Below are positions 1 to 42,519 of a stretch of 64,000 nt of DNA, piece after piece. Position 1 is the first letter of the stretch; each line of letters opens with the position of its first letter. The position numbers were made by a program, and so were the translations under genes. Where the stretch lies: contig MU626319.1 of assembly GCA_025603075.1 (NCBI GenBank), forward strand, positions 45,365 through 109,364, in the 5' to 3' direction. This DNA comes from Neoconidiobolus thromboides FSU 785 (lineage: Eukaryota; Fungi; Entomophthoromycota). The notes beneath the pieces are model-generated. The model had not been told where the DNA came from, ran no database searches, and saw only the letters and a program-made list of their open reading frames with translations.

Positions 1-1710
1 AAATTATCAATTATTGAATTATTTAGTATAGATGGAGTTATACTATTATTAATTAAATAAATTTGTTTAATTTTCCCATATTTACTTGTAATTTGTAGGG
101 TCTATTATTTGATGGTATTAGTAATATTTTTATAGAACATATCATTAGCTTACCAATTCATAATCATTATTGTTATACTCAAAATTAAATTGATGATCTA
201 ATTTAAATTCTGGTGTTTGTCCGTAGATCCAATCCCAAGACTATAGAAGTTGATAATAAAATGTATTAATATTTTATATTGAAATTCTTTGAATATTAAA
301 ACCTCTTACTTTCAACTTATCTGCATAACTTAAAATTGATGGATTTTTATTTAAAAAGCTCCTATCAATTAGAATTGGCTATGTTATTTTAAAATAAATA
401 TATTGGAAATAAAATAAAATAAATAATAATTAAAACTCTTACTTCACACTTTTCCCCATTATTATATTTTATATTAAATTGATTTATAATAGCTTTACAA
501 AATAGTGAATGATTCAAATCTTTTTTGTAATTAATCAAATTGGTCACTTTAGATCTTACTGAATCTACGCCTTTACTTTCAATAGTTAAATTATTCTATA
601 AACAAATAAAGAGAACAAATATTAATTAATTTAATTATTATTTTAAACAAAAGTATGTAAAATCAAGTGTTGCAATTGATATAAAAAATACTTACTTTTA
701 ATACCTTGGATAAACTATTTAAATTGGTATCAATTAACATAGTCCCATGATGATAAGCCCAACAACCTGATATTTTATAAGCAGAACCAGAGATGTAATA
801 ATATCAATAATAATAAGGATTCAAGTTAAGTCTTTATAATTTTATAAATTTCGATTTCATTGTATTAATCATTTAAAATTTTCAATACTAATAAATTGGG
901 TTTTGAATTTATAGAAATAAAAAAAGGATATCTTTAAGTCATCAATTGTTAAGTCTTTTCTTTCATTAACTTTGACAGGTAAATTGATTTGATTTAATGC
1001 TTGTTTCACCAAAGTTACATTTATTATTCGTTCAAATTTTTCACGTTCCATTAATACAAAATAATTACTGTTACCTAAATCCTATAGTGTTTGATTAATA
1101 TATTTTATTATTTTTATTTATTTTTTATTTATTTGATCATTTATTTTTTAAATTTAATTAAAAAATTTCTAATAACTTACATGATAAACCGTACCGCCAC
1201 CACTTTGTCTTCTTACTAATTTTATATCTTGTTTTTTTAATTCGAATAAATTGCTTTCTTTCCAAGGGTTCTATTTTATTTTGTTTCATTTTATTTTAAT
1301 GTGTTAGATAAATAAAAACTTACTTGACTTCTACCAATTACTACACATGCTTCATTTTGATATAAATACAACACTCCTCGATGATTAGGTGGAGTTTTTT
1401 TTATTATCCTTTTATAAAATTTAATATGCAAATTTACTATATTATATTATTTATTTTAATTATTACCATTCTTCAACAGCTATATTAAGATATGGATCTG
1501 TTAATGAAGATAAATAAATACTAACCTAATAAATTATATTTAGTTAACAATTGTTTTAAAATGAGAATCCTTGAATATTTGATTTACTTTATTTTTATCT
1601 TTTGAATCTATTTCATTGGATTTAATACTTGAATAAAATTTCTTTGTAATACTAAGTTGATTCAATAATTTTAAACTATTGATATTATTGATACGTTTTA
1701 TTGTCATCAT
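1..1710 (-). CDS. AIM22: Mitochondrial lipoate-protein ligase A / lipoyltransferase (Lip3/Aim22-like), multi-exon, 3' end runs off the window
   Basis: Manual splicing gives MMTIKRINN.. (presequence-like), [77 protein letters not shown] and [11 protein letters not shown], which are LplA-family motifs. Confidence 0.92.
795..931 (-). other. AT-AC (U12-type, minor spliceosome) intron, 137 nt, phase 0
   Basis: The minus strand reads GACTTAAAG|ATATCCTTTTT...GACTTAAC..ATCCTTAT..TATTAC|ATCTCTGGTTCT. Removing it restores the conserved KISGSAYK, and no GT-AG solution was found. Confidence 0.88.
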
Positions 1711-1876
1711 TTTATCTATTTTGTTTATTCTATTTAAAATTTTGTGAATTTATAAAGTTAAAAAAAGAAAGAATCAAAAAAAGTTAAAATAGCAACTTCC
1801 AATTTTAATAAAAATATCAAAAACACAAAAATGATCTCATTTTCATTTCCTTATAACTTAACCAATAATTTATGAA

Positions 1877-4497
1877 TCAACTATATATATAATTAGTGTT
1901 AATACATTTATCACTTTTAAAATAATATAAATTGTATCTTACCTCCAATTTTTTCATTAGTTTATTTATTTCTTTTATATTATCCCTTTTGTTTTCCTTC
2001 ATTATATTCATATTAATTAATTGAAATTGAATATTTAATAGTATGTTTTTAATAAATTCAACATTACTATTAAAAGTTAACGGGTTATTGATTGGATTAA
2101 TATTATTTAAATAATCTATTGAAATTTCTTCATAAATATCTAATAATTCAGTATTAATTTCATTTTCATTTTCTTTATCTTTGTCTTTATCTTGACTCTT
2201 ATGTTTAATATTATTATATTGTCGTCGTTGATTCAAATTACTATTTTGATTTTTAAAATCATGATAATTATTGATATCATTTCCATCTTCAAATTTTGTA
2301 ACTGATAAATTTAGAAAACATAAATTAGAATTCATACTTTCATAATCGTTTATAATAACATCATTCTTCCTACTCCTGTCTTTCTCATTTTCACACTCAC
2401 TTCCCTTACTAATTAATAGATTCAATAAATTTGGGTCTTTATTTGAATTGTTAATTTCAGTATTATTATTATTATTATAATTTATTTTAATATGATTTTT
2501 ATTAATATATTCATATTCATCTTTGGATTTTGGTATTGGTAATTTTAATAATTTAACTTTATTTTTAATATGATTTTTATTATTACTTTTAAAACTACTG
2601 GTATTATCACTGTTTTTGATACTACTATTACTATTATTAATATTATTAACACTGTTATTACTACTGTCTTTTATATTACTCTTATTATTACCCTCATTTT
2701 TTAAACTGCTTCTACTATTACTCTTCCCACTTCCACTCCCCTCTCTCACATTGCCTTCTTCTTTCCCATTATTTTCAATTACATTCTTAAATTTATTAAA
2801 CTTATCTAATATTAATTGATGTTTTAATAAATCATATTGATCTAAATTAATAATTGAATTTAAATTAATTTTATTCAATAATTCGATTAATTTTTTATAT
2901 TTATTAATCTTTAATTCATCTTTTAAATCTTGATTTGATATATTCATTTTTTCTAATTGAGTTATAATCTTTTGATAGTGTAATTTACGTTGGTCTGATT
3001 GTAACTCAAAGGTAGGAGCATTATTATTAGGTATGGTGAAGGCTTCCTTCTTTTTTTCTTCTTTGATGTTATTAATGGGAATTGTCTCTTGAAAATCATG
3101 AATATACTTTTCATTGATTTGGCTATTAAATACTAAGTTCTCACTTTCTCTTCTATTATTATCAATATTCATATTTATATTCTCCTTTTCACTATTTTGA
3201 TTTGATTTTTGCTTCATATTCTGTTTTTTATTGATTTTATTAACGGATATCAATTTTTCTTTCTGTTGAGTGTTATAATTCATCTTTGAACTCTCCTCTC
3301 TATCATTTAAATTCCTATTATCATGGTTACTGTTATTATTAATTTCATTAATTAAAATTGAGTTCTTTTTTTGTTTAATATCAACGTTAATATTATTGAT
3401 ATTCTCTTTTTGAATATTTGGATTTCCTTTTCGATAAGAATTAGAATTTTTATTCAATTCATTAAATAACTGTAACTTTTTTTTTTCTTTGTTATTATTG
3501 ATACCAGTTGTCATAGCCTTAACTCCAGTACTAATTTCATCTAAAAAATAGTTTATTTTAAAAAAAAATTAAACATAATATTTAGAATATATTTACTTTG
3601 AATTAACTTATTAAATCTATTATCAGTATCCTCTTTTCTAATTACTCCAACTTTATTAACATCAAATTTATCTCTATTTAATATACTATTTAATGTTAAA
3701 TCTAAATTATATTAATATCATTATATTATATATGTTATATCAAATTTACTACCTTTAAACTCTTCCTCTTTAATCAGTTTGTCTTTAGGTTTAATTACCT
3801 TATTTAAATTATCATTATACTTATATTGTTTGTTATAGAGTTCAGATAATAATTGAGTATCTAAAATAGAATTGGAATTGAAATTAGATAAATGATTATT
3901 ACTTAATTTCTTCGAATTAGGACTACCATTGCTAATATTAGCAGGTTCTTTATTACTGCTACTCCTTATACTATTACTATTAACAATATGCTCTCTACTA
4001 TTCCTCCTTGTACTACCATGATCAATTCTGTGCTTTATATTATTGTTCCTCAAGCCGTTCTGATTGATAATATGCTCTTTACTATTCCTTCTTGTATCAA
4101 TATTGAAGTATTTATTTTTATTAAATTGATTAATATTTAATTGAGTTAATAATTGAGTATCAAATAAATTTTCTGAATTTAAACTGGATAAATAAATGGA
4201 ATTTTGTTGCTTTGAATTCCGCTTATTAGTAATATACTCGTTATTATTAACACTATCATCATTTATATTATTATTACTGTTCTTTATATCCTTAATATTG
4301 TTCTTTATATCATTTATCTTCTTATTAATGTTTATACAAACATCATTGCCCTTATTCTCCTGTTTTTCATGGATTACTAAACTAGGATTGTTACTATTAT
4401 TATTAAATAATAGATTTAAATTTAGATCATTAATTAAAAAAGAATCATATTCATAATTGATTGTAGTTGGATTTGTAGTATATCTTTCATTTTTCAT
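1877..4497 (-). CDS. Large Asn/Lys-rich low-complexity protein of unknown function (2-4 exons, junctions uncertain)
   Basis: Two long same-strand ORFs (258 and 545 aa) are separated by ~200 nt containing splice-like signals. No recognisable domain; the C-terminus looks helical. Confidence 0.65.
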
Positions 4498-21013: not shown

Positions 21014-24000
21014 ATGTCAGATGCCAAATATTTTCAACGGGGTACATCTTTGGTGTAGATTATAATAAATAACATAGTAATATTCTCTTTTAGGTAAAAT
21101 CCAAGAACTTCGCAATGAGTTAAACTCCGATAAGAAAGATCCCAAGCATCAAAAAAAGAAAACAGTAATGAAAAAGATAGTAGCTAACATGACCATGGGA
21201 AATGATATGTCTTCATTATACACAGATGTAGTAGCTTGTATGCAAATCAATGTATTAGAAATTAAAAAAATGGTTTATCTCTATTTGATTAATTATTCGA
21301 GAGCTAAACCAGAACAAACTAAAACAGCTATTGCTTATTTTTTAAGAGTAAGTAAATAAATTGACCTTCCTTTTTTCATAATGATTAATATTAATCTACT
21401 TTCATCATAGGACGTTAATGACCCAGACCCATTAATTCGAGCATTAGCTATACGTACTATGAGTTATATTCAAGTTAAAGAAGTGATTGATTCTCTTATT
21501 GATCCATTAAGAAAAAGTTTAAAAGATAGTGATCCATACGTTCGAAAAACGGCAGCTACTTGTGTAGCTAAATTATATTCTTATGATCGAAATTTAGTTG
21601 ATGAAGAAGGTTTTATGTCCATGTTAAAAGATTTATTATTAGATTCTAATCCAACGGTATGTGTTTTTGATATGTTTCTATTGTTGCAAAAAGATCAATA
21701 TATTGATTTATTGATTTTAGGTGGTTTCTAATGCAGTAGCTGCATTAGCTGAAATATCGGAGCGTTCACCTGAATTAACTTTGCAAATCAACCTTAGAAT
21801 TGCTAGTAAATTGATCGCTGCATTAAATGAATGTAATGAGTAAGTTTTTGCATCTGTATTTTTATAAAGTATCCTTTTAACCTATATAATTCAATTAGAT
21901 GGGGCCAAGCTTACATTCTTGAAACTTTATTATATGTAGTACCACAAGAACCTGGAGATGCTGAAATGTTAGCTGAGCGTGTAGCGCCACGATTACAACA
22001 TGCCAATGCCAGTGTAGTTCTTAATGCTATTAAAGTAATTATTTATTTAATGAATTATATGGGTAAAGAAGATGATGTTTTAAATTTTTGTAAAAAATTA
22101 TCACCACCACTTGGTAAGTTTTTAACTATGATTTTAAGATTCAATTATAAAAAAGGAATTAATAATTTTGTTTTAATTTATTTTAGTCACTTTATTATCT
22201 TCTGGACCTGAAGTACAATATGTAGCTTTAAGAAATATTTTATTAATTATTCAAAAACATCCTGGCATTTTAAAAGAAGAAATCAAAGTTTTTTTTTGTA
22301 AATATAATGATCCAATTTATGTTAAATTAGCTAAATTGGAAATTATATTTCGATTGGCTACTTCAGCTAATGTTGGTCAAGTATTGAATGAACTTGTAGA
22401 GTAATTGTTTTTTTTATAATAGTAATTCATTAATCTAGTTAATCTATTTAGATATGCTTCTGAAGTAGATGTTGATTTTGTTCGTAAATCGGTTCGTGCT
22501 ATTGGTCGATTAGCTATTAAAATACCAACTTCAACTCAACGCTGTATATCTGCGTTATTAGAATTAATTCAAACTAAAGTTAATTATGTAGTACAAGAAG
22601 GTATTGTTGTTATTAAGGTAAGCGATTTAATATGATTTAAATTTAAATAATATTAAATATTGGATCTTTTAGGATATTTTCCGTAAATATCCTAATAAAT
22701 ATGAGGGTATTATCGGTAAATTATGCGAAAATTTAGATTCTTTAGATGAACCTGAAGCCAAAGCAGCAATGATTTGGATTATTGGTCAATATGCTGATCG
22801 TATTGATAATTCCGATGAAATTTTAGAAGGCTTTATGGATTCTTTTTTAGAAGAACAACCAGAAGTAAGTAAACTTTATTATTAATTATTATTATTACTA
22901 ACTTAAGTTAAATTAACATTAATATTTTATATTAAATAGGTGCAATTATCATTATTAACAGCAGTAGTTAAATTATTTATTAAAAGACCTACTGTTGGTC
23001 AAGAATTAGTACCAAAGATACTTAAATGGGCAACAGAGGAAGTAGATAATCCGGATCTTAGAGATCGGGGATATATTTATTGGAGGTTATTATCAGCTGA
23101 TCCATCAGCAGCTAAAGTAAAATTTAGTATAAAAATTAATACCAACAAGTATTTTATTAACATATTAATTAATATTATCAATAGGCTGTTGTATTAAGTG
23201 AAAAGCCGGATATTTCTACGGAAACAGAGAATATAGAAATTGCATTATTAGATGAATTATTATTACACATTTCTTCATTAGCTTCTGTTTATCATAAAAT
23301 ACCATCCACTTTTATTCCTGGATCAAAACCTCGATTTTTGATTGATTCAAAAGTATTACATTGCATGATTCCATCTCAATCCGAATCTACTATAGAAGAT
23401 AACAATAATAGTAATAATAATAATAAGTAAGTAGAATTTGTTCAATATAATTGGGTTTTAATTGGTCATTTATTTTATAGATCTATCACAACCAATGGTT
23501 TTGGTGATGAAAATAACGCACCTTTTGATGGGGGTTTCTTTAATAATGCTTATGTGAATGATGTAGCTCCAGTAAATGAAGGTCAAATAGTGAATTTATT
23601 AGATTTAGATTCTGGTGATTTTGCCTCTGCTATGGGACAAGTAAATAGTACTACTGATTTTGGGAATGGAGAAATGGCAGATAGTAATATTGTATTTGAA
23701 TCTGGGTTATTGAATCAAAGTATGAATGGCTCTATTAATAATTCAAGTAGTTATTATGATTCTTCTAGACAACAATCAAGTAATAATAATAGTTATCCAA
23801 ATGTACAATCTATTTTTAATTTCAACAATAATAATGATTCCATTCAGTTTGGTCAACAAATGGATTCCCCTTTCCCAATGGCTAATTCATCCGATTATTT
23901 TGCTAATCAATCTCAACAAAACATGAGTTTTAATAATAGTAGTAATAATGTACTTGGTAGTATGAATACTTCATTTAATTCATCTAATCAAGCAAATAAT

Positions 24001-40630: not shown

Positions 40631-41614
40631 TCTTAAAGTCTTAAAAGATGAAAGTTTGATTTTTGACTTTTTTGATTTTTATACTTAAAATTTAGGCGAT
40701 GAATTCAAAACCTTAGTCACGTTTTTTGTATTCTTAAATTTCGATAAGTTTGAAATTTGACAGCTTTTTCTGTGACGTAGATAATTGAGTTTTTAGCAAT
40801 CGTTGTAAATTAAACTCGCTATTTCTGGGAATGATAGAGTATCCTGTCAATATGAAAATGATATTATACTATACTTTTATATCATAGCTTTTTATATCAG
40901 CAATCAATAATCATAATATATAGACGCTATGTAATTTTTGTATCCCATGATACGATCTCCCCTCAACTTAATATTATGCTAGAAGTTTAATAACCCTATT
41001 TTATTTTTATTTTTCAATGATTGGTTAGGTTTATTGATTTTTTTAGTATGTGAAATTATAGTAAAGTGACTATTTTTATATTAAAATGCAATAGGAATGC
41101 AATAAAAATTTGATCAATTACTGTATCCATGGTTATGATTAAAGCTAATTTATTATAATCTCCCTCTTTCCTTCTACTTTATAATTAATAGAATATCATT
41201 AATATGGTTTAAATAACATAGCATTATTATGTTTTAGTTATGTTATAAGAACATCTAGTAATTTTAAATCTTGTTCCTTTTTTATTCAGTCACAACATAT
41301 AAAACTTTTCTTACTGTAAGCTGTTTGTTAACTCTTCACCTTGTTGAAATGATTAGAACCAAATATTAAAAAAGGCTATTAGCCAAAACTATTTATTTTA
41401 AAATTAATGTCAATTAGATCTAATTCTATTAATACAAGATTTGATTTGATACTGTTGGACTATGTATATATTAAGTTGCTCTAAAAATTTTATAAAGTTC
41501 ATAGTGGTAGAAGTGTTGGTTTCTAGTAACAAAATATTTTACTAAAAGATAACTTGTATTTAAATAAAATTAAGCTTTTATGTTAGAATAAATTTAAAAG
41601 GATATAATATATAT

Positions 41615-41712
41615 GGGGATGTATTCTTGTATTTAACAATTTTACTAACAATTTTGCCACCCAAATAGCGCTTAAAAGATGGAGAAAGTAATGAAGCCAA
41701 AAAAATATCCCC
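41615..41712 (+). mobile_element. MITE family 1, copy I
   Basis: Near-consensus copy. Confidence 0.85.
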
Positions 41713-42034
41713 ATTAATTAAGATTTTTAACTTCAGCTTTAGTTGCCCATTTGGTGGAGTAATTTAATTTTTATAAGTCTATATTTTGGCTTACTACTAT
41801 ATTAACTTTTATTCTGTTTTTTATCTATCATTTATATGAAACTATTAAGAGCTTATGATAGGGCATATCTGTTTATCATATTAAACATAAAAACACAGAA
41901 ACACAAGTACTCGAGAAGTATGAGTTAACAAACAATGAAAATATATCTCAAGTTAAAAAAGCCAGCTTTAAGCAAAAATTACTATTAACTCATAACACAA
42001 TTTTAAATTTTGATTCTACAACCTAATATTATAC

Positions 42035-42129
42035 GGGGATGTTTTTTTGGCTTCATTACTTTTTCCATCTTTTAAGCGCTATTTGGGTGGAAAAATTGTT
42101 AGTAAAATTCTTGAAAAAAATATACCTCC
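42035..42129 (-). mobile_element. MITE family 1, copy J
   Basis: Reverse copy about 320 bp from copy I. Confidence 0.85.
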
Positions 42130-42519
42130 GTATGGTTGTTTTAACACTTTTATTTAGCTCTATCTGAGTTTTATTTTCCCATTTAGCTAGGTAAAACTAA
42201 TAACATGTTTAATGATAATAATTTATCGCTTTTATAGTAAGTTAATACTGTATACATTTTATATTGGTTATATTTAGTCTCAAGTATTCTATATTAATTA
42301 CATTTAATAGTAAGTATTTTTCCATCATATTGTTATTTTAGAAACTTCAATAAATAGTTACGTTGAAGAATCAATTCAATTTTTACTTTATTTCAATGAT
42401 AATAAAAAATAATATAGTAACCATTAATATTTAAATAAGAAATAATATGATAGATAGTTGAATTTAAGTCAAGAATAACAGATAATCAACATTAAAATTT
42501 AAAGAAATAGTTAAGAAAC

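Follow-up and report, generated by a model that had tools for sequence, protein, structure and literature searches.

The first 1,710 nucleotides of the window, by which we mean the whole 64,000-nucleotide stretch of Neoconidiobolus thromboides FSU 785 analysed here, contain a gene for a lipoate-protein ligase of the LplA/LIPT1 type, which is read on the minus strand and whose 3' part, the last ~200 nt, lies beyond the left edge of the window (Table 1). The protein matched Pfam PF21948 (LplA-B_cat) with E = 7.4e-56 and 189.7 bits against a cut-off of 27, over profile positions 1-199 of 200, and PF03099 with 27.2 bits against a cut-off of 21. A profile-free search with exon 5 alone against 1.8 billion representative proteins retrieved the deposited NCBI protein P0001 (389 aa; contig MU626319.1, assembly GCA_025603075.1), which is identical to our independently built gene model, and the closest relatives found in protein searches belong to Zoopagomycota and Mucoromycota. 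The ligase is probably a nuclear-encoded mitochondrial enzyme. The surrounding DNA is very A+T-rich, with a G+C content of 20-33% in the window, and directly upstream of the ligase gene, at 1877-3514 on the minus strand, is an open frame of 545 codons with an extreme abundance of Asn, Lys and Ser and no obvious domain.

Alignment of the deposited 389-aa protein to the DNA gave an exact splice map with nine GT-AG introns and one AT-AC intron, the latter spliced in the deposited model at exactly 931..795. The nine GT-AG introns are 50-100 nt long and have the form GTAAxx...AG (GTAAGT, GTAAGA, GTAAT... to ...TAG or AAG). In alignments with PDB entries, exon 5 extends as far as E. coli LplA K133 and bovine LIPT1 K135, and exon 6 begins at E. 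coli residue 134 and bovine residue 136. The AT-AC intron thus directly follows the lysine that precedes (I/V)SGSA(Y/F), a residue known to be catalytic in those two enzymes (E. coli K133, bovine K135), and in the ligase of N. thromboides the sequence K169-ISGSAYK exists only after AT-AC splicing.

Table 1. Coordinates of the ligase gene, of its AT-AC intron and of the matching position in other species.
Feature	Position	Strand	Remarks
Lipoate-protein ligase gene, LplA/LIPT1 type	1..1710	-	ATG at 1710; 11 exons, 10 introns
Exon 5, residues 120-169	932..1081	-	ends gat gac tta aag = DDLK (...TIDDLK)
Presumed catalytic lysine codon aag, end of exon 5	934..932	-
AT-AC intron, intron 5 of 10, 137 nt, phase 0	795..931	-	exact splice map; sole junction keeping K-ISGSAYK
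5' splice site ATATCCTTT	923..931	-	U12-type consensus /ATATCCTT(T), 9/9 match
CTTAAC, second branch-like word	825..830	-	-36..-31 from 3' end
TCCTTAT, likeliest branch-site word	813..819	-	-25..-19 from 3' splice site, 18 nt before end
3' terminal dinucleotide AC	795..796	-	paired with 5' AT; intron end ...TATTAC
Exon 6, residues 170-202	696..794	-	starts atc tct ggt tct gct tat aaa = ISGSAYK
Entomophthora muscae, AT-AC intron			same codon boundary, phase 0; 61 nt; start ATATCCTTTCGT
Basidiobolus meristosporus, AT-AC intron			same boundary, phase 0; 74 nt; start ATATCCTTTTCT; TCCTTTAAC 11 nt from end
Basidiobolus ranarum, AT-AC intron			same boundary, phase 0; 77 nt; start ATATCCTTTTTC; TCCTTAAT 10 nt from end
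Syncephalis plumigaleata, AT-AC intron			same boundary, phase 0; 73 nt; start ATATCCTTTACA
Mortierella claussenii, AT-AC intron	L012:1504-1638		start ATAAGT, same boundary, phase 0; our reading of the DNA against the deposited model
Paraphysoderma sedebokerense, GT-AG intron	L010:1231-1291		same boundary, phase 0
Mucor hiemalis, Dispira simplex, Fimicolochytrium jonesii, Allomyces javanicus, Acanthamoeba castellanii			intronless at this boundary

Signals and junctions of the AT-AC intron

The initial annotation, made from the letters alone, had read exon ends of DDLK and ISGSAYK, an AT-type opening and a close in TTAC, all of which were confirmed in the minus-strand sequence. From 931 the intron opens with ATATCCTTTTTT, a 5' end also written ATATCCTTTTT. 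The intron is 84% A+T, and its last 18 nt (TATTATTGATATTATTAC) are A/T-rich without a C run, which at such a composition says little on whether a polypyrimidine tract is lacking between branch site and 3' end. It had also been described as two to three times longer than its neighbours, which is true against the median of the nine other introns (137 nt vs 62 nt, or 2.2x) but not against its two immediate neighbours of 99 and 100 nt, relative to which it is only 1.4x as long.

The 5' splice site motif carries its weight through where it lies. RTATCCTTT occurs three times in the window against 3.2 expected, a count that proves nothing, and because of this the evidence for the AT-AC intron rests on position and not on motif number: ATATCCTTT, with a per-position frequency of 1.6e-5 in the window, falls here precisely at the exon end that homology requires.

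Both branch-like words named by the initial annotation, CTTAAC and TCCTTAT, are present in the 3' part of the intron. Read with the following base, TCCTTAT(T) agrees with TCCTTRAY at seven of eight positions and has a T at the canonical branch-A position; its distance from the 3' end fits the class criterion of about 10-26 nt for the branch word. None of the gene's nine GT-AG introns has TCCTT in its last 40 nt, and the chance of encountering TCCTTA[AT] within 30 positions is 0.007, so that we infer TCCTTAT to be the putative branch site. The distance between branch and 3' splice site is short in U12 introns, and for this reason CTTAAC probably lies too far upstream to serve as the branch site.

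Between exons 5 and 6 we enumerated the GT-AG, GC-AG, AT-AC, AT-AG and GT-AC removals that keep the frame open (n = 36), and the collinear K-ISGSAYK product came from 931..795 alone. The initial annotation had stated that there is no GT-AG alternative, and this was borne out: the only two stop-free, frame-preserving GT-AG removals, 1044..767 and 888..767, each delete a run of 10 residues and destroy the conserved motif. The GC-AG, AT-AG and GT-AC alternatives delete or disrupt conserved residues, and unspliced read-through meets a stop 21 codons downstream. That the mechanical ORF track runs on into KISFFYF was likewise found, in the ORF at 869..1051 on the minus strand. Eleven of twelve aligned orthologues carry K-(I/V)-SGSA-(Y/F)-K, and there is no viable junction other than 931..795.

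The orthologous position in other species

Intron maps drawn from eleven orthologous genomic loci showed the codon boundary of the AT-AC intron to carry an intron in several lineages (Table 1). Four orthologues, from Entomophthora, two species of Basidiobolus and Syncephalis, are annotated with an AT-AC intron there, and in a five-species DNA alignment of these with N. thromboides ATATCCTTT is invariant while the intron bodies are unalignable; selection therefore maintains the sequence that pairs with U11 and U6atac in these lineages. Nothing else among the evidence speaks as strongly for the class of the intron, or for a functioning minor spliceosome, as this purifying selection on U12 signals in five species. 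The proposal of the initial annotation that this genome keeps a working minor spliceosome is supported only indirectly, through the same selection and through the literature on Zoopagomycota (PMC10639083). Because the same U12-type AT-AC intron is common to Entomophthorales, Basidiobolus and Syncephalis, it is at least as old as the common ancestor of these Zoopagomycota lineages.

Five independent annotations, those of N. thromboides and of the four orthologues, all place an AT-AC intron at this boundary. To our knowledge, ab initio predictors that lack transcript hints propose no AT-AC introns, and the five annotations can be taken as indirect support for splicing.

Mortierella claussenii (GCA_022750515.1) appears to present a different state. 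Its deposited protein P0177 uses a forced GT-AG pair that gives KKIR-SAFK, and it is the sole sequence to lose VSG in the twelve-orthologue alignment, where the others follow the pattern KK(V/I)SGSA(Y/F)K. An AT-AC intron of 135 nt (ATAAGTTGC...CTCTTCCAC) restores KK|VSGSAFK, so the public model seems to be mis-spliced. The ATAAGT start and the pyrimidine-rich 3' end of this intron (...CTCCTCTCCCATCCCTCTTCCAC) make it look like a U2-type AT-AC intron. The prediction that gene callers limited to GT-AG would mis-model this gene is supported in principle by our enumeration of junctions and by the Mortierella orthologue, but the deposited model of the N. thromboides gene itself is correct.

In Paraphysoderma sedebokerense (Blastocladiomycota) a 61-nt intron, GTGAAC...AATAG, interrupts VVDGKK|VSGSAYK, and it is a candidate for minor-to-major conversion of the same ancestral intron. 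If the positions are homologous, a U12 AT-AC intron, a U2-like AT-AC intron and a U2 GT-AG intron, together with losses, would occur at one site, though parallel gain is possible. Three such states plus losses match the known routes of minor-to-major conversion and loss (PMC10639083), and the site may serve as a compact natural series for minor-to-major intron conversion.

Several GT-AG positions of the gene are also common across fungal phyla (loci L001-L011), namely EE|W in phase 2, (R/K)(S/N)Q|N(P/A)W, VY(H/Q)|D and the boundary before (S/T)W(D/E)W, and the intron at VY(H/Q)|D is found in Acanthamoeba as well. Since several other introns are positionally conserved in this way, the structure of the ligase gene is old. 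The ligase gene of Dispira simplex has one intron left and has lost all others.

Intron class, RNA data and competing explanations

The sequence features of the AT-AC U12 class are found together at this intron: the 5' consensus, a branch word, the terminal AC and conservation of the class among orthologues. Taken together, they make it very likely that 931..795 on the minus strand is a genuine, ancient and positionally conserved U12-type AT-AC intron. The initial annotation had called it a canonical AT-AC U12 intron in a lipoate ligase gene, a call upheld by the perfect 5' consensus, the AC end, the restored motif and the four Zoopagomycota orthologues. If minor splicing follows its established model here, the /ATATCCTTT 5' splice site would pair first with U11 and then with U6atac, U12 would pair with TCCTTAT some 20 nt before the 3' end, and excision at AT...AC would join DDLK to ISGSAYK to give the 389-aa enzyme. 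Removal in RNA at the 931..795 joint, and its dependence on minor snRNPs, are what these signals lead us to expect.

Public sequencing runs were compared by run-index word shares, with 11 words sampled from the intron and 186 from window 1-1800, and with a run type that was guessed ('RNA?'). The share of the words of window 1-1800 is expected to be 0.41-0.46 if only exons are present, 0.50-0.55 for exons plus the AT-AC intron, and 1.0 if everything is present. Five RNA-labelled runs from two studies (X1-X5) contained 0.44-0.56 of these words, with X1, whose organism label is that of the DNA source, at 0.56. The eleven words of the intron itself were present at 1.00 in X1 and at 0.73-0.82 in X2-X5, and DNA runs of other strains reached a similar level (0.55-0.73). 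The RNA assemblies seem to contain the AT-AC intron in unspliced form but to lack most of the nine GT-AG introns, which suggests that the AT-AC intron is noticeably retained in RNA. Since its sequence persists in these assemblies, its removal is probably slower than that of the nine GT-AG introns. Absence of the intron from RNA runs was considered as evidence of splicing and was ruled out, the runs holding intron words. A hosted small RNA was likewise rejected as a cause of the extra length or of the presence in RNA, as there was no Rfam match to E = 1 and the fold had z = +1.0 relative to shuffles. Searches of protein collections, using either the whole protein or residues 60-260, returned no near-identical sequence besides the deposited model, and so no transcript-derived protein of this species.

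Terminal dinucleotides alone reportedly do not define the class of an intron, a point associated with Dietrich, Incorvaia and Padgett in 1997 and with Wu and Krainer in the same year, and an AT-AC intron could in principle be removed, like a small subclass of its kind, by the major, U2-dependent spliceosome and so be uninformative about the minor one. The imperfect branch word TCCTTAT would sit comfortably with such removal, as would the lack of any Rfam match to a minor or other snRNA within the 64-kb window, the only DNA to which that search applied, and the Mortierella intron, with its U2-like ATAAGT at the same position, makes U2-type AT-AC splicing plausible in fungi. We nevertheless regard U2-dependent removal as very improbable here, since the 5' end is not ATAAGT but a perfect ATATCCTTT, the consensus that pairs with U11 and U6atac, and its invariance in five species with diverged intron bodies is hard to explain without minor machinery. 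Two of the orthologues, moreover, have a textbook TCCTTAAT or TCCTTTAAC 10-11 nt from the AC, and minor introns and minor snRNAs are both documented in the phylum (PMC10639083). More improbable still is that the gap is never removed, in which case the gene would be broken or would yield a shortened product of 190 residues, with a deposited model that is a homology-guided guess. The intron words in the RNA-labelled runs (all eleven in X1) would agree with this, as would the X1 share of window 1-1800, which is closer to the expectation for exons plus intron than to that for exons only, but an unspliced form is compatible with a spliced one, and from contigs one can read presence but not absence. 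None of the 11 exons is damaged or out of frame, the nine canonical introns have strong signals, and the splice signals of the AT-AC intron are perfectly kept where those of a dead gene should decay. The same arrangement is found in four other species, and the protein searches returned a single relative of the ligase from this genome.

The reading as a U12-type intron could be extended to a slowly spliced, 'detained' intron whose retention limits or regulates the amount of active lipoate ligase. This intron, alone among the ten, seems to persist in RNA assemblies of two studies, and its retention would lead to a stop 21 codons past the presumed catalytic lysine; some U12 introns are known to be spliced slowly (PMC4066798). 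Set against these points are the coarseness of the word shares, with 11 and 186 words and a guessed run type, and the situation in Rhizophagus, where retention of minor introns differs only modestly between cell types (PMC10639083), and we consider the extension unlikely. A broader proposal is slightly more doubtful again: that the intron after the catalytic lysine acts as a slow-splicing gate, setting ligase supply by way of a truncated inactive product, and that one ancestral position survives in all three conversion states, as U12 AT-AC in Zoopagomycota, U2-like AT-AC in Mortierella and GT-AG in Paraphysoderma.

Relation to known minor introns

Minor introns, which Dikarya lack, are known from Zoopagomycota (Basidiobolus meristosporus, n = 249) and Glomeromycotina as well as from some chytrids and from Neocallimastigomycetes; minor snRNAs are also present in Zoopagomycota (PMC10639083). 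The N. thromboides intron resembles the U12 AT-AC introns of other early-diverging fungi, such as B. meristosporus and Rhizophagus irregularis (Larue and Roy 2023, PMC10639083), in its /ATATCCTTT start, its terminal AC and, not far from the 3' end, a word like TCCTTRAY. The Basidiobolus lipoate ligase introns are its orthologues, and it too is a single rare intron among many of GT-AG type. It differs from its orthologues in being longer (137 nt, at 84% A+T, vs 61-77 nt), and from those of Basidiobolus in a degenerate branch word, TCCTTAT, which at -20 is farther from the 3' end than the corresponding words at -12 and -13.

Animal and plant AT-AC U12 introns have the identical 5' consensus and terminal dinucleotides, going by the accounts of Hall and Padgett 1994 and Tarn and Steitz 1996 as cited in PMC10639083, but lie in a different set of genes; LIPT1/LplA genes of animals or plants are not known to have a U12 intron at this site. 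The slow splicing and retention reported for such introns (PMC4066798) would fit the RNA word shares described above. U2-type AT-AC introns (ATAAGT...AC), the type to which the Mortierella claussenii orthologue apparently belongs, share the terminal dinucleotides with the N. thromboides intron, but this class fits it poorly, as it begins with ATATCC rather than ATAAGT and has a U12-like branch word. Acanthamoeba has a minor spliceosome, and the ligase gene of A. castellanii is intronless at this site.

Our literature searches brought up no paper naming minor introns in Conidiobolus, Neoconidiobolus or Entomophthoromycotina, though the data of the pan-eukaryotic survey (PMC10639083) may include such species. 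With the present case the catalogue for Entomophthoromycotina gains a firmly placed minor intron, and one that has been kept at a single codon boundary across Zoopagomycota. It is also a useful annotation marker, in that pipelines restricted to GT-AG introns break the catalytic motif of the ligase, as the Mortierella orthologue appears to show. Knowledge of minor splicing itself stays the same, since this class of intron was already established together with its signals and its scattered occurrence among fungi, and the public gene model needs no correction.

The two other RTATCCTTT matches in the window, at 21869 on the plus strand and 41597 on the minus strand, are not splice sites. The former belongs to GTATCCTTTTAACC, a chance U12-like word of no evident role at 21843-21899 (plus strand), within an ordinary GTAAGT...TTAG intron of a plus-strand gene. 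The region at 41578-41714 (minus strand) holds a second ATATCCTTT within a short element that recurs inverted at 42039-42167 (plus strand), about 400 bp away. Small ORFs in both copies read ...FFWLHYF.HLLSAIWV.KLLVK..., and the element looks like a MITE-type repeat rather than an intron.
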